NCBI GenBank assembly: GCA_020536535.1
Contig: JAHLWZ010000530.1
Location: forward strand, 62,001-126,000
From: Pelomyxa schiedti
Lineage: Eukaryota; Protista; Evosea
DNA: 64,000 bases
Reading direction: 5' to 3'
The position numbers and the translations under genes were made by a program. The notes under the pieces are model-generated. The model was not told the DNA's origin and did no database searches. It saw nothing but the letters and a program-made list of their open reading frames with translations. Of the stretch, positions 25,042 to 39,709 are shown piece after piece. The stretch's first letter is position 1, and each line of letters opens with the position of its first letter.

Positions 25042-28000
25042 ATGGGCAACAACCCGAGCGGTCGTTCTCGCGACCCGAATATTGCAGAGTCGTCAGTACC
25101 CACTATACCTGTCTCAGCCGCCGTAGCCGCGGAAACTACTACACCAACAATCAGCAACAGCAACAGCAACGGCGCCAGCGCCCAGCCGCCGCAACCTCCG
25201 CCGCCACGAGATCGTCCAAGCGTCGTTGGATACGACGAGTTCCAGAGGGTGTTGCGCGACCGCGCCGCTTTCTTCACAGCTATGTCAAAGTCGGTCACCG
25301 TCGCAGAAGTGCAGAACTCGTCGGGGAGTCTCGTCGTGTCGAGGAACTTCAGGCTCGTGAGGAAAATCGCGCATGGTTGCAATGGTATCATGCGGTGCAT
25401 GGGCATGGGTTGGGCTGGGTGTTACTGACGTGCGTGAATTTTTTTTTTTTTTTATTGACAGGGATTGTGTTTGAGGTGAAGTGCATTGGGGAGGGACACC
25501 CTCAGTTGTTCAAGGAACAGTCTTATGTACTCAAGGTTCCTTTCAATTATGGTCACGCCACAGAGAGTGTTCAGAATGCCTTTGAGGTGTGCCTTTATCT
25601 CTTCTTCTTTTTTCTTAATTTGTTTCTTTTTTTATCCCCCTTCTTCCAGAATGAATACCTCATTTCATCCACATTGGTACCACACCCAAACATCAACCAA
25701 TATTTCTGTCACTTCACAGACCGTGTCCCACAAGAGTATTGTGACCACCTCCCAGAGGTGGCCAAGGAGTATGCATTTGACAAAGCAAGGAATCGCCCGC
25801 ATGCGTGCATGTGGGTTGTACTTGAGTATCACTCAGGGACGTTGGAGCAGTTTTTGAGGTGCCTCAACACCACTGCTCCCCAATCAACCGACACCATCAC
25901 CACACCATGGCCAATTGTGCACAAGTACTCCAGGGATATTTGCGCTGCTCTTGTGCATCTTTTCGAGAATCGCATAATTCACTTTGACATCAAGCTGGAC
26001 AATATTGTGATTTCCTCTGTGTGTTGTTTCTCTTTCTTTTTCTCAAACTCCACTCTTAAACAATACAGAACAAGGAGCAGGCGATTCTGATTGATCTTGG
26101 GTGTGCAATGAAATTTCCCAGGAACAACAGGCCGTTTGAGACCCAAATAGTGGCTCTCAAGGCAGCACAAGGAAACCAAAGTCACAGGGCACCTGAGATC
26201 ATCAATGTGATCGCAGAGCACACACAGAATCCAGATCGGGTTTCAATGTTTTGTTGTGACAAGGTACCTTCCTTGATCCCCCAAAAAACAATGACCAACA
26301 GTCACTCAACTCAATTCCGCTTTGTCCAAAACAGCAACCGTCATTTGAACTTGGATGCATTTTGTTTGAACTTGCAATGTGTGGAGAACATCCACTTCCA
26401 GGATTCCCTGGTGGCTATGGCCCAAGTGGTCAGATCACATTCTCATTTGAGAGTGAGGAAGAGTTCCCCATGAAACCACCAGCATTCCCAAAGGAGTTTT
26501 GCAACCTTGTCCGATCATTGTTGCAGAATAACCCCGATAAAAGGATGCCTCTGTTGAAAGCTGCAGATGTGCTGTCAAACATTGATCCCCCTGAATTCCT
26601 CCCATTTTACAATAGTGTTATCCCTCAGATAAATGATGCAGGTTTGAACACAAAACGAATACATGAAGTTTCTCAATGATAAAAACCGAACACAGGAACA
26701 CTGACAGGCAAGGCAATATGTCAGATTCTTTATGGTTCTGCACAAGATTGTGCTGACACCCTCTACATGGCTCTGGAATTGGAACCACTGTTCTCCCCTG
26801 CTTTACTGCTTTTGCGTTATCTCAATTCTTGTTCTACTATTGCGACCCCCACTCAACATTCCAGTGCTCTCGCGTCACTCACAGGAAAAACGGCCACTTT
26901 CACAGCCACAGATGTGGAATTCACAAGAGCCATCATCAACAAGAAACACAGGAACACACTCCCTGAATTGACTTTGACAGCACTCTGGACAAGGCACATC
27001 TCACATGAGGCTTGTACTGCCACTCAGTTGCTTCTAAAAAAGATCGCAGCGGTTAACCAGCAAGTTCTCTCAATCACAAGATTGGCCTCCCTTTTTTTGT
27101 GGTCTGTCATCAACACACGAAACGAGATGATGATGGAGGCACTTTCACAGTTGGATTCGGGAAAAATTGACTCTGCCCTTGACATTGTGGCCAATGCAAC
27201 CTCATTGTTTGAAGAGGAGAGGAGAAGCATTTGTATGTGAAAGTCTTCTTTTTTTTTTTTTTCCTCTCATCCATGAAACAAACAAACAAAGTGAGAACAG
27301 AATGGATGATCATGCCAGCCAACAACCAGTTTGAATACCTGCCTGGACTGTTGCTCCTTTTTATTCTATGTTTTATTGTAAATGACCATGTCACACTTGG
27401 TCAGCACATACCAGCCAGCCTTGCCCCAGCTTTTTCTCATGCAGTCTCTTCCTCATTTGTGTCAATGAGAGCCCAATTCTCGCGTGTGTTGAACAAGGGG
27501 GAGATTTGGAAAAAGAAATTCACTGCTGAGTGGTCTGAACTTGTCACAATAGCAGAAACTGCAGGCAAGCACTCACTCACTACACCTGAACAGACCCAAA
27601 GACTGTGGGCCTGCCTGCATTTTGTTGCCTTGTGGAGGACTTTGTGCACCTCCACTCAATGTGTGGCACCTCTTTGGGTTGAACTGAGTTCAATTGCAAG
27701 TACATGTGAATCCACTGTTAGCACCCCAGTGGGGCACATCCACTGGCGTGCTTCCTCCCTCACTCATCTGGGTATCTGTTACAACTTCGGTGTTGGTGGT
27801 GTTGACACGGACATTCACAAGGCAGTTTCACATTATCGGGAGGCTGCTGATGCCGGAAGTGCCATGGCAATGCTCAACCTTGCTCTGTGTTATGTGAATG
27901 GAAATGGTGTGGACAAGGACATTCACGAGGCAGTCTCACTTTATAAGAGGGCTGCTGATGCTGGTGATGCCATGGCAATGTGTGCTCTTGGTGTGCATTA

Positions 28001-29510
28001 CGAGAAAGGCAGTGGTGTTGACAAGGACATTCACAAGGCAGTCTCACTTTATCAGAGGGCTGCTGATTCTGGTGATACCATGTCAATGTTCAACCTTGCT
28101 CTGTGTTATCTGAATGGAATTGGCGTGGACAAGGACATTCACAAGGCAGTCTCCCTTTATCAGAGGGCTGCTGATGCTGGTAATGCCATGGCAATGTGCA
28201 ACCTTGGTGTGCATTATGAGAATGGCAATGGTGTTTACCAAGACATTCACAAGGCAGTTTCACTTTATCAGAGAGCTGCTGATGCTGGAAGTGCCCATGC
28301 AATGCACAACCTTGGTGTGTGTTATGTGAATGGAACTGGTGTTGACAAGGATACTCACAAGGCGGTCTCACTTTATAAGAGGGCTGCTGATGCTGGTGAT
28401 GTTATGGCAATGTGCAACCTTGGTGTGCATTATGAGAACGGCAATGGTGTTGACAAGGACATTCACAAGGCAGTCTCACTTTATCAGAGGGCTGCTGATG
28501 CTTGTGATGCCCATGCAATTTGTGCCCTTGGTGTGCATTATGAGAACGGCAATGGTGTTGACAAGGACATTCACAAGGCAGTCTCCCTTTATCAGAGAGC
28601 TGCTGATGCGGGTAATGCCAATGCAATGTTCAACCTTGGTGTGTGTTATCTGAATGGAACTGGTGTTTACCAAGACATTCGCAAGGCAGTCTCCCTTTAT
28701 CAGAGGGCTTCTGATGCCGGAAATGCCAATGCAATGTACAACCTTGGTTTGTGTTATGTGAATGGAACTGGTGTTTACAAAGACATTCGCAAGGCAGTTT
28801 TTCTTTATCAGAGGGCCGCTGATGCTGGAAATGCCATGGCAATGCTCAACCTTGGTGTGTGTTATCTGAATGGAAATGGTGTGGAGAAGGACATTCACAA
28901 GGCGGTCGCACTTTATCAGAGAGCTGCTGATGCTGGTGATGCCATGGCGATGCTCAACCTTGGTGTGCATTATGAGAACGGAAATGGTGTTGACAAGGAC
29001 ATTCACAAGGCAGTCTCCCTTTATCAGAGGGCTGCTGATGCTGGTGATGCCCATGCAATGCACAACCTTGGTCTGTGTTATGACAACGGAAATGGTGTTG
29101 ACAAAGACATTCACAAGGCAGTCTCACTTTATCAGAGGGCTGCTGATGCTGGAAGTGCTGATTCAATGTGCGCCCTTGGTGTGTGTTATGTGAATGGCAA
29201 TGGTGTTGACAAGGACATTCACAAGGCAGTTTCACTTTATCAGAGGGCCGCTGATGCTGGAAGTGCCCACGCAATTCTAAACCTTGGGGTGTGTCATGAG
29301 AATGGAACTGGTGTTGACAAGGACATTCACAAGGCAGTCTCACTTTATAAGAGGGCTGCTGATGCTGGAAGTGCCAAAGCAATGTTCAACCTTGGTCTGT
29401 GTTATAGGAATGGAATTGGAGTTGACAAGGATATTCAGAGGGCTAAGTTACTACTTGAGAGAGCAGCACAGCTGGGTGATGCTAGAGCAACGCTTTCAGG
29501 GTCTGTGTAA
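25042..29510 (+). CDS. PINK1-like kinase + helical linker + 16 SEL1 repeats, multi-exon
   Basis: MGNNPS start (N-myristoylation-like). IAHGCNGIVF, VLKVPFNY, HPNINQYFCHFTDRVP, HFDIKLDN, IDLG, GNQSHRAPE, FELGCILFEL. The terminal exon carries 36-aa SEL1 repeats. Confidence 0.88.
27858..29477 (+). repeat. 15 near-identical 108-bp coding tandem repeats (SEL1)
   Basis: The unit ..GACAAGGACATTCACAAGGCAGTCTCACTTTATCAGAGGGCTGCTGATGCTGG.. recurs every 108 nt. Confidence 0.97.
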
Positions 29511-29740: not shown

Positions 29741-31734
29741 TCAATCATCGTAGCCAATTAAGGCTAGGTAGTGAGACCCATAAGCGTTGTATTCCTCCAC
29801 TGTCATCAGTTCCTTATCAGCCTCAGTTACTTCAGAGAACAACTTTGGCCGGCCTTGTACAGTCACAACAAACTGGTCCTGGCTCTCCATATTCACAGCC
29901 TGGTCATCACTCATTGCTGTTGATTTGGGGTCCTGTTGGAGGTGCGGGGGAGTCATTTGCTGCTTCTGCGGGGCCGTGGGAACCTCCGCAAGAGACAGCT
30001 GCTCAGAGTCCGAGAGTGTCACCCATTTCCCCGAAGGTAGGCTTGTTCTGGAGCGAGGCTGCGGCATTGGTGGTGCAACGGGAAGGTTCAAGTTCAGTGC
30101 GGGTGCTTCCGGAGTTGGGGAGGTGGTTCTTGTTGGGGAGTTGCTCTGTGGGTAATTCTGCTGTTGGAGGGGCCCTTTGGAGGGTAGTGTTGTGGTGCTG
30201 TTGTTCTTGTTGTTGCCGCTCCCCAGCATCAGGCTGGAGTCTCTCGACTCGAGCCATGGAACGGCTATTTTTTTGCGTGGGGGCTGGCTTTGGGGTTTTT
30301 CGGCATCATCATCCACAAATTCCACTAGGAAATCAACTTGTACAGAGGAGCCGCTTTTCGCTTTTGCCAAAAGTGTCATGTTGTAAGAGTGTGATGATGT
30401 TCCGTGAATTGAGGGTGTTGTGGGTTGTTGTACAGTGTTGGTAGACCGAGAGTGAGTCAGAGCTTGTAAATGCTCTTGTGTAGGTAAATCAAATCTGCAA
30501 AACAACGATAATAAGTGAACTTCCAAAAAAAAAAAGTGTAACAACTTTGGGATTGAAGTCAGGGCAGATACGGGAGTAGAATCAGAAACTCTTAAGAAGT
30601 CTGAGGCTTCTTTTACAAGGTCAATTACAGGTCTTATCTGTTGCCCGATTTGTTGTTGTCTTTTTTGAAGTTCAGAATCCACGTTCTTCTTCGTTTCAAC
30701 AAGAGGAGCCGCACAATGCTCACAAACTATTTGCTTGGTAGGGGAAATGCAACGAGCAAGGTCTGCTTCTGTGTATCCTCTACCACACCCAGGGCGGGGG
30801 CATAAAAAGGCGTACTCTTTCACTGTCCCACCACTTGAAGATGCTGCCGTCATGAGTAAATGTACACGAAGCATAAGTGCATAAATTGCACGCCTGTAGT
30901 CCACATACCAAAGCCTTTTTGTTCTTGGCTGGGGTTTGTGAGGCTGCTCCACTGGTGGTGGAGCTGGAGTAGAAGCTGGTGTTGGGGTTGGTGACGGCAG
31001 TCCAGAAGGTGTTGTAGTTTGAGTTTCATGTTTTGCAGTCTCCATATGTCGGTGTTGGTCAGAAACAAGGTGTGCGTTATGCAGCTCAGTCAAGGTTTTC
31101 AACACTTGTTTTGTTTGAAGGCAAAGAATTGCTGCTAGCTCACTTTCTGAAAGTAACAACTAAGGGGGTTGTACTTGTCAAAAATACACCACTAAACATT
31201 AAAGTAGAAGGAAAAGAAGAAGTACGGTGAAGAGGTGAACACCCCAAATCCCAAATAAATTAAGGAATAAAACAACAAACAAACCTTATGCCGCAAAAGT
31301 GCATCCAGAACCACTACATGTTCCGGTCTGGTTATGTGTACAAAGAGTAAACACAAAGAACCATAGGTGAAAAGGAAAAAGAAACAAAACACAAAAAAAA
31401 CAAACAAAAAAAAAAAAAAAAAACCAGGCAAACGACAGCCATACTTATAGAAACAACGAACTACAATGCGCAGCAGGTCGTCCAGCGCGTCGGCGCCAGT
31501 TCGCGCGACAACGCCGCCGTTCGACGCGGGCACAGAGGCACTTGCGAGCACAGGCGCGGGCACGGACGCAGGCGCGAGCGCGAGCACGGGCGCGGGAGCG
31601 GGCGGGGCGGTGCCGGTCCCGGTGGCCGACGTGGTCGCCGCGCCCGGCACAACTTGCTGGCCAGATCTGCTCGCCATCGGCATCGGCACGCGCGACGCTG
31701 CGCCGCTCAACGACGTCGGGGGACCCAAGTTCAT
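29741..31734 (-). CDS. GTF2E1: Transcription initiation factor IIE alpha subunit
   Basis: LLRIVVRCFY..EHVVVLDALLRH winged helix, WYVDY, zinc ribbon CPRPGC..CEHC, and C-terminal VTVQGRPKLFSEVTEADKELMTVEEYNAY. Confidence 0.9.
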
Positions 31735-31888
31735 GCCTGCCCCTGTCTGATTAGGCGCCTTGGTTTGTTATTGCGACTGAGGAAGTCAACTGGAAATGAG
31801 AGAAAACACAAGAAAAACCACAAAACAGCGGAATCGGTTTTTTTTTTTTTGGTGCACTTTCGCACAACGAGCAGGCATTCCCCCATCG

Positions 31889-34800
31889 ATGTCGGCGTCC
31901 AATTCGGTAGCGGGGGTACCGTCGTCTTCTGCCACAACTCCAGCTTCGACAACATCAGCACCAACCAAAGAGGGCGACTACAACCTCCGCCGTCGTGCGT
32001 CGACCCAAAGCGGAAGCACCAGCAAAAGCAGCGGGAAAGGCAAAGGCAAAAGCAAGGCGGCGGACAGCGACGGCGACGACGACTACGACGGCGCCGAGGA
32101 GCGGCGGAAGGAAGTTGTGGGATGTGCCGAAACCGCGGCCAGCAAGCCACGCAGGCGCCGCCACCGTGACCGGTCCCCGTCGCCGTCGTCGTCTTCCGAG
32201 TCGCCCAGCCACGAGGCCACGCCGTTGCTGCAGGCGTCGAGCAACTCCAAGTTGAAGGGACGAGGCCCAAAGGACGCCGCCGTCGCCACGATGGAGCCGG
32301 CGTCTCGGGGGCCGACCCATAATCCAGGCTCAGCTGCTACCGCCTCCGCCTCAGCCGCCGCTTCCTCGTCGCCTTCCGAGACACTTTGTGTGGGTACAAC
32401 CGCAACCGGCGGCAGCAGCAACGGCACTTATGGGTCCGGTGGATCGGGCAGGGAACAGTCCTTCTCATTTATCACAATTGACAGACGAGAAGACTTGTTG
32501 ACTGCCGGATCACAGATACAACTGGGGTTGCTGGCAGGGTCCCTGTCTGATATTAATACCGCAGAGAATCTCACGCCGAGCGATGGCTCCAAATCCGGCG
32601 AAAAGACTGACTCGCCTGGCGCGAATGTGTGCGGACTGTGGCAGGTTTACCTGAGGCCAATTGTGACACCAATTGCTAGCCCCAATTCAGTTACTGCTGC
32701 CTCTGGTAGTAGCGGCGGTTCAAATTCCCAAATCCAACTTTTGCCAATTTCTGGGGGAGCTCCGGCAGTTTCTGATGTGTCTTTGAGGTCTGCTGGTGGT
32801 TCTGAGGTCGGCGATGGAGCAACAGCTATTGAAACAGATGACACTCTAGAAGTTATTGGGAAGGTTGCTGGATTGCCTACAACAACCGTAAAGAGTGGGA
32901 CAATGTTTGATCTATTGTGTTGTTGCTCAAAGGCTATGTACACTGAGGCAGAAATGTGCTCAGCTGGTGCTACTTCTGGCCCTGAAAATGAAACTATTAC
33001 TCTCAAGTTTTCAATGTCTGAGTCATGGACTTTCTGCCTTGGATTTTACATGGTTCCTCCAACCGACTGCTCTTCTTAAATAACAACAACTAGGCTGGTG
33101 ACTCTGTTAAATTTGCTGGTGGCGCTGCCATTGAATCACCTGAATCTGATATCAGAGTCCACATCCACCAAGCAACTAAACAGGGAGTTACTGTATCTTT
33201 CGAGTCAGCACTGTTCCCTGGAACCTGGGTGGCGACTCCGGCTCTGCCATTAGACACAACCGAGATTCGAACAGTCGCTCCACTGGAGACAACACGTGAT
33301 CTGTCAAACAGAGCTTTATTTTGTACACTTCTGGCAGGACTCCGATTCCTATCTAATTTACCTAGGCATTTCACATAGTGTAAATCGACAGAGTATTCAT
33401 GAAGAGTGTCAGACGTCCCTTCACAATATCAAACAGTGGCTTATTCCAGGTTTGACTGTGTGAAATTCAATTTTTTGCTCGCTAAGACACCTCAAACAAT
33501 AACGACAACAGCTTTACAGTTGGCAAATATTCCACCAGAAAAAAGTGTGATATTAAACGCACTTACTCATATTGATTTACATAAATGGAATTTGCCTCTG
33601 GACTCTGTTCTTGTTCTCCCACGGCATCTAAAAAATACCAGGATTTTCATGTTCGAAAGTTACCTATTTTCCACTAGCAACTCAACTCCAGGGAAACACG
33701 GCTCTTTCTTTGGGGACTAGAGTACTTGGATGTACGGCCTGGTCAGGATCTTCTGCAAGTCAACGTTTCAATCGGAAAAATTGCACAAATACTCTGCTAT
33801 TTACTTCGAGATAGTAGAGATGAATTTAGTTTTACTGGCTGGGATATTGATCCAACCCTTCACCATTGGCTAAAGTAATTCCTTGTAACTTTCATTCGAG
33901 CACTGGGGAGTTCAGGCACCGTTAATCTCATTTTCCTATATAGGTTCATCTTCCGACACCGATTCAGTGAAGCCCACAAGATATCTGTGGCAGTACAAAA
34001 TTGCTTCACCTTTCCCGCAATATATAAGGGGAAATTCGACCGAATTATGTTGTGTGGCAAGGCTCCACAAACCAGATATTATCAAATGTGTTCACTACTG
34101 AAGCCTGGAGGAATTCTTGTGGTTGGGACTAGAAGGTACCAAATGCCGATTGATAAACGGCTTTTAAGGGTTGCTTTGAGACTCTTGCTGGTGGCAGGCT
34201 GTTTCAAGTGCGAAAGGCACTCGATGGTACCTTATCCCGAGTTGTAATCACCGTTTTTCATGGTTTGGACAAACTCTGTGTTTCCCATTTGATAGTTTCC
34301 ACTCAGGTATCCAAGCAGCTGAACTTCCCAATTTATTGGCTCCTCCTGTCATCTCAGAAATGCATGACAGGGTAACGAGACTCGTTTTCTCATTCAGTTT
34401 AATAGTTTTCAGGTTACACATTTCCATGGTGATCTAGATGATGAAGAAGGTAAATTGTGAGGCTTTCAAAATAAGCCAACTTTTTTTTTCTTACAGAGTT
34501 ACGACAGTGGCTGGTTTATTTTGGAGATGCCTATAATATGAACCTCAGCAAGTATGCTCCAGTCATACTCAACTCTGGGTACCCGCTCCCACTTATCAGA
34601 GAGGGTACACCTGACAGCCTGAGAGATCTCAATCAATGACATTTTCAAAATAGGTGGGGTATCGTTTGAAGATTTATCACAACTTGGAATTCCAACAGCA
34701 GACGCAACTGGCCTTGCATTTGCTATCACAAAATATTCGAAGTTCATGGAAGAGAAAACGGAAGCTGCAGCTCGCGAGACCAAACGTGTGTTCCACGCAC

Positions 34801-36291
34801 TATAGGATAACCCTTAAAAAAGAACAAAAGGAAAAGTACAGCACATCGATATTTCTGTGATCAGAGTGCATGTAGATCTCCTTCGAGTTGATGCCGTTTT
34901 ATCTGAGTTTGAGATCTTACTTGAATTAACTCTACATTATCATGATTACATCCAATGGCGATCTTTGGCGGTGATCATCTTTTAGACTTGTACTTGTGTA
35001 ATATGACAACAGGCAAAGAAAGTTTTTGGTACAGTAGAACAACCTATAAGTGTAGAAGAACTTTCTATTGCCCCACTATTGGCCTTCCCGAACGCCAAAA
35101 GCCCTGTTACCCTCATTTCTGAGGTTTAAATTTTAGTCTCCTTCTGTTTCTTGACGGCACTAGAGTGCCTGCATTGTGCCACAGACAGGAATGGTCAACC
35201 ATTCATTCGTTTTTTCTGGAGTTTTCCTCGAAATAATGGAGCTGCAAAGATTTCCATTTGATCGACAGGTGAAACTTCTCATTTAGAAAGCAAGCTAAAA
35301 ACCATTCCAATAGGTTCTACATGCAGAGTTCAAGCATGACCAAAAGCATCAACAAAACATCAGCATTTCCTGGAAAGAGCCTGACACCCCGTATTTTTCA
35401 AATCCTCCCCTTTTTCCGCTCTCAGCTAAGGCAGGAATCCTGATAACTTCACACTTGTCTCACATGATCGCGAGTGGAAGGAGGCCAACGTTGTCTCAGT
35501 GGCCTATCCACGAGGATCAGATTCCAAGTTGGTTTGTTCCCACTACTGTTTTCTGATCCTCTCTTTACCGTCTCGAAGGTCATCTCTGGAAGAGTTGAAA
35601 GTAATTTTATTTTCCCTAGTTTTTTTTACATTTATCACTGTCAGGATATTCCTCGTACTTCATGTGGAATGTTGTATTCGTGGTATGAAAACACAGATTG
35701 ACAAGGACCTTGTAACATACGTTCACAGATGTGGCTAATTGTTTCAATGTCGTTTATGACATGGGCTCTCCCCCCAGAAGAAGGAGGAGATAGACTCAGC
35801 TTGAATCTGACATTACTTCTCACATCAGTTGCCTACAAAGTAACCTTCCTTCTATTCCCATACTCCGGGACCCCGATGTAACCCGGCATGATAGTATGTC
35901 ATTGCCGGCTACCTCCCCAGGACTGCATACCTCACAATACTTGACCTCTATGTGTTGTCCTCATTCGTTCTTCTGGTCGTTGTGATTGTTGAGAACGCAG
36001 GTGCCGCGATGTGTTCCTCCCCAGCAAACAGAAATCTTGACAAAATATCTGCTATAGTCCTTGTTCCTGTATGGTTCTCCCCTTTTCTAACACAAAATGA
36101 ATTCAAAAACCAAGGTCTGGCTGATTATCAACCTCATAATGACCTTTGGCTGTATTTTTGGGATTTTCCGGCTGAACTGGGACGTTGTTGATGCCGAACA
36201 AATCGTCATCAGTGACAAGGACCGGAAGAGACACAAGAAATTCCAGGGGTTCTTGTCCCGGGGCGTTCTACATCAATCGCAAGACATTTGA
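31889..36291 (+). CDS. Multidomain Cys-less pentameric ligand-gated ion channel: low-complexity N-terminus, PCMT-like domain, SAM domain, pLGIC ECD and 4 TM
   Basis: Spliced translation gives GLEYLDVRPGQDLLQVNVSIG / FDRIMLCG..LLKPGGILV (PCMT-like); ELRQWL..LSKYAPVILNSGISINDIF..SFEDLSQLGIP (SAM); PLLAFPNA, MELQRFPFDRQ (Pro-loop), RYSSYFMWNV, GDRLSLNLTLLLTSVAYK (M2), LPRTAYLTILDLYVL (M2-M3), and M4. Confidence 0.85.
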
Positions 36292-36359: not shown

Positions 36360-39300
36360 TTAGACGTTATCTTGTGGCTGGAGAAGACAAGTAGTCTCGT
36401 CTGTGGGGTCTTGCCCTATTGATACAAGTTTACTGTCACGGGATTTGTTCCGGCTCTGGTTAAAGCTACTTGATGTGGAAGTTGCGGCTGTTACAGAGGT
36501 AGTTGTGGTAGTGGTTGTTGGCAGTTCACTGCTAGAGTTCACACTGATCAAGAGTCCTTTGTTTGGTGACGAGTACGCGGGGTCCCGCTTGTACTCTATT
36601 GAAGTGTCATCGGGAAGGAGGGAATGTTCAGAAGGCTGGTGCTCAAAATCAAGGACATTTCTCTGAAGGCTTGGTGAATCGTAATTTAGCCCAGATTCCG
36701 CCTTTTTAAGGTGATTAGTTAGGATGCAATGAAACTGAAGTACCTGCACGACACTGAAGTGAGGCGTGTCAAGTAAAACCGAATCATCTCCCAAAGGAGA
36801 TACCTCATCAAAAACAGTGGCCGATATTTGCTGCTGGAAGTACCAATGTATGTATACCCACAAAGCAATAGTACTCACGGGAAGCACTAAACCAACCGTA
36901 CTCATAGTAAATTTCTTGAGTTCAAGGACGCCTTCATTGTATCAGGAGTTTGTACATATAATTACAACATACCAAGTGTAGTTATTTGATACATTATCAA
37001 GCTTAGTAATGTTCCATGGCAGAGCCACTGCAAGATAGAACCACCACTTTCATACTTACGTTGGAAAACAAAGCGGAGTAGATATTGACCCTTTAGTGCA
37101 ATTAGACCAATTATAACAAAAAAAGTATTACTCACTGCAATGTGTGCGAAGAAGAAATAAATGACAGCAAAAGGCACAACCATAGGAGAAAGAGAACTGA
37201 ATAGTATCCCAACAGCGAGTACCAGTAGGTTCCTAGAATAGTTGGGTACCCATGGCATGGATCCTGGGTTCGTCAATTTCCTTGTATCTGGAAACTGCAG
37301 TGAGAAATGAATACCATTAAGTGTTACCAACCTCTAGGGGTACAGTTCATTAATTTAGGTGTAATCCAGAGTCTGAGGAGGTTACCCAGGCGGGTCATAG
37401 AAAGAATGGGACCAAGTATCGTGATGAGTTGAATGTAATTGATAAAATAGGTTGCTTGTAGAGGAATGCTTAGAGCAAAGAGTTCAGCATATTCCATTAT
37501 ATCATCTAAAACCTGTTGTAATTCTGTTTTGCTTCTAAAGAAAAGGCTCTCCACTCACCATATACAAATCAGTGAACATTGACCCGGCAAGAACTGATAC
37601 AAGAATAACATTTACTACTAGGAACACAAAGTATGTAGCAGTGCCTAGAATTACAACGTCGGACCTCTGAAGCAGTAAAGGTACGTTCCAGAAGGGGAGT
37701 ACGCTTACCTTCCTGATTCCAACTTTGGAAGCAAATTTAAGAATGACAACAGGGACACTGGCAATGACTAATAAAGTAACAATTGGGGGGAGCAAGCCCT
37801 GAAGAATTCCTAGAACAACAGGACTTGTTTGAAGTAGTGCTATTCCCAGTCAAGAACGAACTTTGATAAAGAAATCTCACCTGTAAGGAAGCTAAGAAAC
37901 TCTATCTGAGAGAGGAAACTCAAGGATCCCAAGGATGCAACAAACGCCATTGGGACAGTCCAGAATAGTGTAATTCCAGACATAATTGCAATGTACCCTA
38001 TACGGCGGATAATCTTTTGTCGCCGGGGCATTAATAGTGCATGCCATACAATGTCATTTGGGTGAGGAGCTAAACAGGGTTACTGTGCGATTAGGAGTTG
38101 AAACCTAACCAGGTTTAACAAGAAATGGCTTAGAGAGATCTTCTGGGTTTGGTATAGTTTTTCGGTATGCACACACTGAAGCTGAAGCTGCAGTGGAAAA
38201 TAATACAAAGGCAAAGTTTGTGAAGCGGCTCAATTTGGCTTGCTCTTCAAACAGGGAATCTAGAAGATCATCTAAACGCCGTACTTCTCCTTGATAATAC
38301 TTGATTGAATCAACTCTCTCCCCCACACAACACAGGCAACACTTTGCACTAACGCGGTAGGTGAGAGTAGGTTGTGGTGGTGGTGGTACACGATGTGTTG
38401 GACGCTTTTTGGATTTGGATTTATTCAGTTTGAGGAGAGTCCGTTCAGCTTCAATGCACGCACGGTTTCTTGCATCTAGTGGATATTGGACAAGAATAGA
38501 AATTGAAGGAAATACCAATTGTTTGATCAATTAGTGGTATTACAACCACCCGTTTAACTGAGACTACATCAGGGAATGTGGAAAGTAGGAAATCTTGAAG
38601 CTTCTGGGCATCCCAGGTTCTTGGGACGTTCTCGAAAAATACAGCCAAATGATGTATGTCCCCAGACTTCCTGTATGCATGAAGAAGAGACACATACTGT
38701 TTTGAAATAAGCAGATTATTCCACTGGATTAGAAGATACCTTTCTGTAGAGCCATAACACCATTAACCAAACAACGGCACTGTTTACAAACATAGAGACT
38801 AAGTGTGCCCATAACAGAGGTGACCCATCTGCCACATTTGAGATTGACGTAACATCAATGCCATTTACATCAGGTGGCTCTGTGCTATCACTTGACAGAA
38901 GCTGTTGCGACTTATCACCACCAAAAATGTCAATTGGAATCAAAGTCACAACGGCTTCCACACTCAATATGAAAGAGACCAATAAACAGCCTTTCGTGAA
39001 GCTGAGGTAAAGCAGTGCATCCAGACCTTGCTCCCTAAGTACAGCAGAATCGGGCTGCCCAATGATGAGATTGTAAAACAAAGAAAGAGCGCTGCTCGGC
39101 GGCGGAACCAACCCAGTTCTTTTCTTCGGTGTAAGTAAAATTGCTAGTCCCGAGAACAGTGGAGTTTACCTTGTAGCCTTTGGGTGGTAAACCGGGCCGT
39201 ACTTTTTACGCAGGACCACAAACATCACCATCATGAACAAGGCCAACAAGCCGCAAAACACCAACGTCGTAAGAAACTCGTCCAAACTGGTGCCATTAAC

Positions 39301-39381
39301 GATCTCAATACTACTACTAGTACTGCTGTTACTCCCCTCAATGTCGCTGCTGGCGCCGCGTGGGCTGCTGAAACTGCCCAT
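36360..39381 (-). CDS. OSCA/TMEM63 (CSC1-like) mechanosensitive channel, multi-exon
   Basis: FVVLRKKYGPVYHPK, GLDALLYLSF, LWAHLVSM, FAFVLF, LFWTVPMAFV, ATYFINYI, YESGG. Confidence 0.93.
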
Positions 39382-39709
39382 TTTTTTTAAAAAAAATGAA
39401 GAACGAAGATACTGAGAGATCTCACAGAAAACTGGTGGCAGGTGCCAAACCGGGGAGTGATTCCCCTGCTTGGGTGTCACCAGCTCGGCGTGACATAAAT
39501 TTTGAAAAAAAGGTATCTACGGAGGACATCTCTCAAGGATGGTCCGAGATCTGCTGTGCCACAGGCGTTTGAACATTTGTTTGTGGGTAAGCGTATTCCA
39601 TGGGAATCAGCCTCTCAAGATTCATTGGACAGGATTACTAATCGTGACTGTGCCTTTCGAAGGTTTGGCTTGTTATATTACATAGTTAGTGGAAGTACCA
39701 GGCATGGAA

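Follow-up and report, generated by a model that had tools for sequence, protein, structure and literature searches.

A gene in the window (the whole stretch of DNA analysed, 64,000 nucleotides, from the anaerobic amoeba Pelomyxa schiedti) encodes, in a single spliced frame, a protein akin to neurotransmitter-receptor channels. From its N-terminus, it consists of a tail, a beta-trefoil, a degenerate PCMT fold, a SAM domain, a beta-sandwich and four transmembrane (TM) helices. Judged from its sequence, this protein would probably be one subunit of a pentameric, Cys-less ligand-gated cation channel placed inside-out in the membrane relative to the Cys-loop receptors, ELIC and GLIC. The following features were located:

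31889..36291, + strand: whole gene, 21 exons, 1154 aa, equal to KAH3761383.1
31889..32488, + strand: N-terminal tail, aa 1-200, of hydrophilic, S/T-rich, low-complexity sequence; no signal peptide by hydropathy
32213..32230, + strand: EATPLL, aa 109-114, an acidic dileucine motif; putative endo-lysosomal/vacuolar sorting signal for AP adaptors
32495..33382, + strand: beta-trefoil with low-complexity insertions, aa ~203-470; structure matches and weak trefoil-clan matches
33401..34344, + strand: degenerate PCMT/PCMTD-like methyltransferase fold, aa ~477-703; structure and profile matches
33747..33779, + strand: AdoMet motif I in degenerate form, LLQVNVSIG against FLNLGSGTG in PCMTD1
34440..34841, + strand: SAM (sterile alpha motif), aa ~722-791; profile, model, and RNA contig over both flanking junctions
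[quoted passage not shown]
35251..35268, + strand: Pro-loop FPFDRQ, invariant in the Pelomyxa set; FPFD is aa 918-921, 35251-35262
35653..36162, + strand: four-helix TM domain M1-M4, PF02932 E 3.4e-7
36169..36291, + strand: 40-aa C-terminal tail with a basic cluster, from the sequence

Gene Structure and Paralogues

Splicing at 20 GT-AG introns of 40-69 nt gave one frame from the ATG at 31889 to the stop at 36289-36291, in agreement with the original prediction, and every residue of the product is the same as in the Pelomyxa schiedti protein KAH3761383.1, annotated in the database as "GABA receptor subunit gamma-3". A single RNA contig of 583 nt matched the gene with 0 mismatches from 34020 to approximately 34876 and crossed six splice joints, connecting the PCMT-like, SAM and channel (ECD) exons. 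Both junctions on which the prediction had relied, linker to SAM (intron 34450-34496) and SAM to channel (intron 34786-34830), were spanned by this contig, and the junction after the PCMT-like domain that had been called ambiguous was fixed as intron 34122-34168. Together with five further channel introns, RNA support was obtained for 11 of the 20 introns; the coverage excludes 31889-34019 (exons 1-5) and introns 34971-35012, 35269-35313, 35840-35894 and 36069-36114. The other unclear junction, intron 33875-33943 (69 nt), occupies a phase-2 position common to all six paralogues, which have about 13 intron positions in common. At 32888-32932 an in-frame intron of 45 nt seemed possible, but it was discarded because the sister paralogue conserves these residues as protein.

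Five paralogues with the same architecture were found in P. schiedti, one transcript ORF with PCMT, SAM and channel in Pelomyxa sp. JSP, and a SAM remnant with a channel in Mastigella. A full-length homologue search returned only the six P. schiedti proteins; the word index is insensitive, and therefore this null result is not proof of absence elsewhere.

A mis-joined model, in which an upstream soluble trefoil/PCMT protein and a separate channel would be two genes, could draw on the exons 1-5 and the intron 34971-35012 that lie outside the RNA coverage, and on the origin of the contigs in Logan, where they are graph paths and not molecules. It is nevertheless so improbable that it can nearly be discounted: PCMT, SAM and ECD exons lie on one contig, the joins and phases are identical in the six paralogues, the second Pelomyxa species has one ORF, PCMT-like sequence is found in the P. 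schiedti genome only ahead of a channel, and neither a start codon nor a spacer separates SAM and ECD. The proposal of a single gene was thus upheld.

Domains Ahead of the Channel

No single exon gave a Pfam match over the cut-off, since the exons are too short, and the folds were obtained from paralogue profiles and models. In this way a beta-trefoil overlooked by the original prediction was recognised. The model, which has low pLDDT in the N-terminal third, shows the three-fold trefoil over aa ~248-470, with VIA matches to IL-1Ra (Z 11.4, rmsd 2.8, 125 aligned) and to the IP3-receptor core (Z 10.0); values of 10-11.4 over IL-1, FGF, haemagglutinin and IP3R singled out no subfamily. Weak trefoil-clan matches were also obtained in Atlas and Pfam, and the domain is kept in the six paralogues.

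The PCMT-like fold proposed next to it was recovered by structure comparison (VIA Z 19.1, rmsd 2.9, 201 aligned; Foldseek E 5.5e-8) as the seven-strand fold in its PCMT form, with helices at the N-terminus. The closest sequence match of its profile was PCMTD1 (E 7.4e-5), and Pfam on the whole protein gave no PCMT match. Motif I reads Q-V-N-V-S-I-G and departs from the acidic/Asn-x-G-x-G-x-G pattern; in each of the seven homologues its first position holds Gln or His in place of the acid, and the glycines are gone in most. The isoaspartyl-binding pre-motif I (S-A-P) was not found before the first strand in any homologue. Residues on the ribose and adenine sides (the post-motif-I Asp and Gln-Asn-Cys) are retained. 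Because motif I and the isoaspartyl-binding motif are lost and these residues are kept, the domain most likely has no catalytic role and binds an adenosyl metabolite or a protein. PCMTD1 itself has a PCMT fold that binds AdoMet but is catalytically inactive (PMC12590147), a further point against the reading of the domain as an active methyltransferase of altered specificity (a "chanzyme"). Retention of the entire fold, a mean identity of 43% among paralogues and the near-canonical D-x-G-x-G of motif I in the Pelomyxa sp. JSP homologue would favour such an enzyme, which is very improbable in view of the two degenerate motifs. That this domain serves as the gating sensor, with a ligand of the methyltransferase fold gating the channel, is conceivable but doubtful; approximately 10 other SAM-capped, signal-less channels of the P. 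schiedti genome have no PCMT-like module at all.

For the SAM domain, the prediction was borne out by a profile match to the Caskin-1 SAM (E 2e-6) and by a five-helix model (pLDDT 81) whose top nine VIA rows were all SAM domains (Z 7.7-6.3); no SAM match was given by Pfam on the whole protein. Another match to the SAM profile, IcmE/DotG, was rejected as a repeat artefact, with no stretch passing alone. Helix 5 continues as one long helix directly into ECD strand 1. The suggested clustering by SAM polymerisation was not supported: the start of helix 5 (the EH surface) is neutral or acidic, with a net charge of -1 here and of -1 to +2 over ten homologues, and this protein lacks the basic end-helix surface that would complement an acidic mid-loop surface. 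Some SAM polymers use hydrophobic surfaces, so polymerisation is still conceivable.

Channel Domains

The pLGIC fold of the C-terminal part was corroborated by a profile over ECD and TM domain, whose best solved-structure matches were a GLIC chimera (E 5e-22) and ELIC (~1e-21; 1.5e-21), and by Pfam (PF02931, E 0.003, for the ECD; PF02932, over the cut-off, for the TM domain). The Pro-loop is present as described and fits the F/Y-P-x-D pattern of the superfamily. As also described, Cys-loop cysteines are absent: none flank the Pro-loop, the C-x13-C pattern was not found, and the whole ECD has one Cys and no conserved disulphide pairs. In loop A the Trp of W-x-P is replaced by an aliphatic residue, and the loop B and C aromatics of the agonist box are mostly absent. 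The M1-M2 linker is acidic, with Asp at -1', Leu is found at 9', and the M3-M4 loop has about 20 aa. If the subunit conducts, the Asp at -1' would probably make it cation-selective.

An inverted and assembled protein might also lack ligand-gated conduction when alone, either serving as a scaffold anchored in the membrane or modulating heteropentamers with the SAM-only paralogues, outside which it would not work. The loss of the loop-A Trp and of most of the aromatic box, the M2 residues Asn 4' and Lys 15', both polar, the three folds of protein-interaction type and the ~17 family members in the P. schiedti genome are consistent with this reading. It is unlikely, however, since conservation is highest in the TM domain (61% mean identity in six paralogues) and Leu 9', Arg 0', the Pro-loop, the pre-M1 Arg (R989) and the M2-M3 Pro (P1046) do not vary within the Pelomyxa set, a pattern that speaks for gating being under selection.

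Orientation in the Membrane

The absence of a signal peptide and the presence of only four TM helices, all C-terminal, were both confirmed by hydropathy. The maximum KD over 10 aa in the N-terminal tail is 0.76 versus 2.4-3.5 in 17 bacterial signal peptides, and this tail has a mean identity of 12% among paralogues. No signal or TM segment was detected by hydropathy before M1 in any of the seven proteins, and the first hydrophobic segment is M1 (residue 992). Because 990 residues and four folded domains precede this first hydrophobic helix, M1 would insert N-in as an internal signal anchor. A cytosolic ECD is therefore likely and the best reading, with the M2-M3 loop and C-tail on the same side of the membrane and the M1-M2 and M3-M4 loops, both short and acidic, lumenal or outside. 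The beta-trefoil, PCMT and SAM modules ahead of the ECD are of kinds usually found in the cytosol.

Three lines of evidence add to the case for a cytosolic ECD: charge bias, a sorting motif and clade-wide signal loss. A K/R bias towards M1-M2 and M3-M4 was observed in 16 of 17 signal-bearing controls, all of them bacterial with no eukaryotic Cys-loop set, versus 0 of 14 Pelomyxidae; the contrast persists without the C-tail (mean +4.2 versus -0.3), its P values are overstated because the sequences are related, and the bias of this subunit itself is neutral (0). An E-x-x-P-L-L/I motif occurs in the N-tails of three of the six paralogues (shuffle P 3e-4; background 0.02 per 200 aa), and AP small-chain genes are present in the genome. 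The motif is missing from three close paralogues and from the apparent N-tails of ten distant SAM-channel genes, and therefore is not family-wide; that it directs the subunit to an endo-lysosomal or vacuolar membrane is possible, at somewhat less than an even chance. Among the animal Cys-less relatives, 73 of 76 have no signal, and post-M4 tails are basic; their reversed charge bias depends on this tail, the core loops alone still giving +2.2. Their ECDs carry 9 sequons versus 27 expected. The Pelomyxidae total is 14 versus 9.5, and thus sequon depletion as a topology marker holds for the animal members and fails for Pelomyxa.

SAM and beta-trefoil folds also occur in lumenal or secreted proteins, such as STIM1 and the ricin-B lectins, and this would suit a normal orientation, as would the sequons of this ECD (N900, N938 and N953, three versus 0.7 expected), one of them common to four paralogues. 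A cryptic signal, a leader exon missing from the annotation or an unusual translocation route would then carry the N-terminal 990 residues into the lumen or to the outside, the extra domains acting as extracellular sensors as in DeCLIC; this orientation is that of every characterised pLGIC (PMC549065). An in-frame ATG upstream, at 31796, was considered as a signal peptide start. The extension is basic and then passes into a weak poly-Phe segment, which a T13 run encodes (KD10 1.3); it was rejected, being far below the hydrophobicity of every control signal and not common to the paralogues, four of five of which lack an upstream in-frame ATG. Space for a leader is also scarce, since the divergent TFIIE-alpha gene lies just 154 bp away. 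These points, the lack of a TM segment ahead of M1, the acidic and K/R-poor M1-M2 and M3-M4 loops, the dileucine motifs in the N-tails and an ECD devoid of conserved disulphide pairs make a normal orientation quite unlikely.

Inversion is probably a feature of the wider eukaryotic Cys-less clade and not of this fusion alone. In a tree without Cys-loop receptors, with narrow bacterial sampling and long branches, the P. schiedti channel and the animal and protist Cys-less sequences fell on one side of a 100/99 branch, versus 17 bacterial sequences. There is about an even chance that the whole eukaryotic Cys-less clade (Pelomyxa, other protists, flatworms, molluscs, annelids and rotifers) is inside-out and gated by cytosolic signals, with the Pelomyxa fusion revealing the orientation and its pseudo-methyltransferase being a metabolite sensor. 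Such an inversion would explain the missing Cys-loop disulphide and signal peptide, the few sequons and the lack of a known agonist.

Proposed Mechanism and Implications

Under the inside-out reading, the pentamer could be homomeric, or heteromeric with the five paralogues. A cytosolic cue would be transmitted by coupling of the Pro-loop, the pre-M1 Arg and the M2-M3 loop to open the Leu-9' gate. SAM and the long helix may take the place of the N-terminal alpha-1 helix and cap the vestibule, SAM being a putative docking and relay module of the whole family, and the beta-trefoil and pseudo-methyltransferase may be add-on regulators of one subfamily.

All characterised pentameric ligand-gated channels sense their ligand outside the cytosol. 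An inside-out member occurring in nature would put the scaffold to a new use, as a channel gated by an intracellular messenger with a role like that of IP3 receptors or CNG channels. Eukaryotic Cys-less pLGICs have no known biological role or ligand (PMC4795631), and those of schistosomes have been proposed as drug targets (PMC9874803). If they are inverted, screens with agonist applied outside would miss them, and the missing disulphide requires no special explanation. In the literature searched on Cys-less, inverted, signal-less or multidomain pLGICs and on Pelomyxa, neither this architecture nor this orientation was found described. Signal-peptide prediction was run on molluscan Cys-less channels in PMC13174522, and the lack of signals may already be tabulated there.

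Comparison With Known Systems

Cys-loop receptors, such as the GABA-A receptors of the database annotation, differ from this protein by the C-x13-C disulphide around the Pro-loop. ELIC, GLIC and sTeLIC, its best matches among solved structures (E about 1e-21), are similar to it in having no Cys-loop disulphide and a short M3-M4 loop, but their ECD is periplasmic and is preceded by a signal peptide (PMC549065). In the bacterial controls, the M3-M4 loops are rich in K/R and a post-M4 tail is nearly lacking. DeCLIC and the bacterial pLGICs fused to PBP-I, Cache or MCP-N also carry, before the ECD, extra N-terminal modules that can modulate gating (PMC9897478, PMC549065); these modules are periplasmic, follow a signal peptide and have other folds.

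PCMT1 and PCMTD1 have the same fold as the PCMT-like domain, and PCMTD1 offers a precedent for its use as a sensor without catalysis. In PCMTD1 motif I is retained, and both AdoMet and isoaspartyl peptides are bound (PMC12590147), whereas the P. schiedti domain is degenerate in motif I and pre-motif I and has no SOCS box. The IP3 and ryanodine receptors are likewise intracellular ligand-gated channels with cytosolic N-terminal beta-trefoils, a functional analogy only, as their tetrameric pore is unrelated; the IP3R trefoil match is no better than that to IL-1 or FGF, and therefore indicates likeness of fold only.

Another counterpart is the eukaryotic Cys-less Pro-loop clade (PMC4795631; PMC9874803), in whose descriptions (Jaiteh et al., 2016, PMC4795631; PMC9874803) the termini were trimmed or undiscussed, no amoebozoan member was named, and signal peptides and orientation were not raised. 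Its members share with the P. schiedti protein the Cys-less Pro-loop, an ECD with four TM helices, an acidic residue before M2, a short M3-M4 loop and the lack of a signal. To this common plan, the P. schiedti protein adds a beta-trefoil, a pseudo-PCMT and a SAM domain ahead of the ECD.

Gene Model and Neighboring Genes

After removal of 20 GT-AG introns (40–69 nt) from the DNA of the window, assigned to Pelomyxa schiedti from the species of its closest protein matches, the region 31889-36291 (+) was read as a single frame of 1154 aa, and the spliced product was identical to KAH3761383.1, labeled "GABA receptor subunit gamma-3" in the database. Assembled contigs from one single-cell RNA run of the same study (X1) supported 11 of the 20 introns with zero mismatches, a coverage that excludes exons 1–5 and four later introns. 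One 583-nt RNA contig started at 34020, within the PCMT-like domain, and ran through the linker and SAM exons, ending 45 nt into the channel exon. It crosses the linker-SAM and SAM-channel junctions of the original prediction, and fixes the junction left ambiguous there as intron 34122-34168. That the PCMT-like, SAM and channel parts form a single gene is practically certain. The surrounding genes were:

27231-29510 (+), one ORF with a long array of near-identical 36-aa repeats, presumably Sel1-like from the repeat pattern
29741-31734 (-), divergent TFIIE-alpha-like gene (Pfam TFIIE-A_C, E 0.002), its start codon 154 bp from the start of the channel gene
~36360-39480 (-), convergent multi-exon gene, its stop codon ~70 bp from that of the channel gene; we take pieces of it to resemble an OSCA/TMEM63 channel

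Domain Composition

Table. Domains of the 1154-aa protein
aa 1-200, low-complexity tail in which paralogues are 12% identical
aa ~203-470, beta-trefoil, VIA Z 11.4 (IL-1Ra) and 10.0 (core of the IP3 receptor)
aa ~477-703, PCMT fold, Z 19.1, Foldseek E 5.5e-8
aa ~722-791, SAM with five helices, E 2e-6 against Caskin-1; the top structural matches were without exception SAM domains
aa 806-1112, Cys-less pLGIC, matching ELIC and GLIC at E about 1e-21

The PCMT-like, SAM and pLGIC folds read from the sequence at the outset were all recovered by these matches. The beta-trefoil had been overlooked; the Atlas also gave trefoil-clan leads for this stretch, each scoring <0.9. The top sequence match of the PCMT-like domain was PCMTD1. 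In the Pelomyxa domain, the acid of motif I is replaced by Gln/His, most of the glycines are gone and the isoaspartyl-binding motif is absent, with the post-motif-I Asp and the Gln-Asn-Cys following strand 3 retained. With a mean identity of 43% among paralogues, this domain is, judging from its sequence, a pseudo-enzyme under selection. Helix 5 of the SAM domain extends as a single long helix that leads into strand 1 of the beta-sandwich (ECD). Since the end-helix surface is non-basic, the SAM polymerisation proposed originally is, in its head-to-tail form, unsupported, and clustering through a SAM polymer is unlikely. The pLGIC part carries the Pro-loop, the pre-M1 Arg, Asp at -1' and Leu at 9', and lacks the loop-A Trp and most of the aromatic-box residues. 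In a tree built without Cys-loop receptors, it grouped with the Cys-less channels of animals and protists, and 17 bacterial sequences stood separate from this group.

Paralogues and Relatives

Five paralogues were found in the P. schiedti genome with the M2 exon as query, all with identical domain order. All six genes share about 13 of the 20 intron positions; among these are the two SAM junctions and intron 33875-33943 (69 nt). In the genome search, PCMT-like sequence was confined to the contigs of these six P. schiedti genes, each time preceding a channel. A transcript of Pelomyxa sp. JSP (P0023) also holds PCMT-like, SAM, ECD and TM parts within one ORF, and in Mastigella (P0031) the channel is preceded by a SAM remnant. 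Outside Pelomyxa, a full-length protein search of limited sensitivity found no such fusion. Around ten more distant P. schiedti Cys-less channel genes (L014 and L057-L065, on contigs C861, C1721, C238, C998, C346, C838, C93, C1004, C583 and C187 of G000) have hydrophilic tails, some with a further helical region; most carry a SAM-like stretch ahead of the ECD, and none matched the trefoil or PCMT profiles. Therefore, SAM plus channel would be the family core, to which a single subfamily has added trefoil plus PCMT.

A seventh close channel paralogue (L056, G000:C85:19482-19886, -) has its N-terminal part cut away by the contig end. Additionally, the public model KAH3765081.1 (P0001) drops 26 PCMT-like residues through a late acceptor; the genomic DNA (L009:5265-5400, G000:C237) holds them in frame.

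Orientation of the Channel

As stated in the original prediction, there is no signal peptide: M1 is the first hydrophobic segment in all seven proteins, none preceding it. The sole upstream in-frame ATG (31796) was rejected as a signal-peptide start, adding only a weak Phe stretch, encoded by a T13 run, that lies well under all 17 control signals in hydrophobicity and is missing from the paralogues. When Sec61 inserts a protein whose first TM helix comes only after 990 residues containing folded domains, the N-side of that helix stays cytosolic. With four helices, the ECD, M2-M3 loop and C-tail would therefore lie inside; the two other loops, M1-M2 and M3-M4, would face the lumen or the exterior. 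The channel is thus likely to be inverted, its ECD facing the cytosol.

A K/R excess on the M1-M2 and M3-M4 side was found in 16/17 signal-bearing bacterial channels vs 0/14 Pelomyxidae (mean bias without the C-tail, +4.2 vs -0.3), in counts where the sequences are related and the controls bacterial only. The subject subunit itself has a bias of 0, with a basic cluster further down its tail. Three of the six paralogue tails, otherwise unalignable, share an E-x-x-P-L-L/I motif (shuffle P 3e-4; background 0.02 per 200 aa); two of the carriers are sister paralogues, and the motif was not found in the distant ones. Motifs of this type are recognised by cytosolic AP adaptors and direct sorting to lysosomes or vacuoles. 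AP small-chain genes are present in the P. schiedti genome, and a TPC1 case is cited in PMC11085791. Only the sequon count, among three topology tests, leans against inversion: the subject ECD has 3 vs 0.7 expected, and Pelomyxidae 14 vs 9.5. The shared sequon, present in only 4/12, falls where a strand begins, a position that structurally favours Asn/Asp.

The animal Cys-less relatives (P0040-P0158; flatworms, molluscs, annelids, rotifers and nemerteans) have long hydrophilic N-tails, and 73 of the 76 with an N-terminus lack a signal-like stretch, the three exceptions resembling strand 1 or doubtful starts. Their post-M4 tails are strongly basic (6.5 K/R in 15 aa), the K/R bias is reversed in 33/33, and ECD sequons number 9 vs 27 expected, again for related sequences with bacterial controls only; the core loops alone still lean canonical (+2.2). 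Three oyster proteins (P0062, P0066 and P0072) contain two ECD+TM units per chain, the second ECD straight after M4, and are either natural concatemers or fused gene models.

Proposed Mechanism and Comparison With Known Channels

Five subunits, perhaps a mixture of paralogues, would assemble into a cation channel with its sensor side cytosolic, possibly in an endo-lysosomal or vacuolar membrane. The SAM domains would sit atop the vestibule, replacing the alpha-1 helix, and relay signals received from partners, from the trefoil or from the pseudo-methyltransferase module, the gate being opened through the conserved ECD-TM coupling. Given inversion, a conducting, regulated channel is likely; an organellar location has somewhat less than an even chance, and the gating sensor that had been suggested for the PCMT fold is rather unlikely.

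The gene is real and unusual, and its four-module head was previously undescribed. In a literature search mostly outside subscription journals, nothing was found on inverted pLGICs, this architecture or Pelomyxa ligand-gated channels. The gene belongs to the known pLGIC superfamily, and probably to the known, uncharacterised Cys-less clade, whose main paper cut off the termini and calls architectures and roles unstudied (PMC4795631). On the predicted topology, it lacks the signal peptide and extracytoplasmic ECD that define the superfamily. PCMTD1 demonstrates that a PCMT fold is usable as a non-catalytic AdoMet-dependent sensor (PMC12590147); it retains motif I, whereas this is degenerate in Pelomyxa. 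The N-terminal fusions known so far in bacterial pLGICs sit behind a signal peptide (PMC549065), in contrast to the Pelomyxa fusion, which has none.
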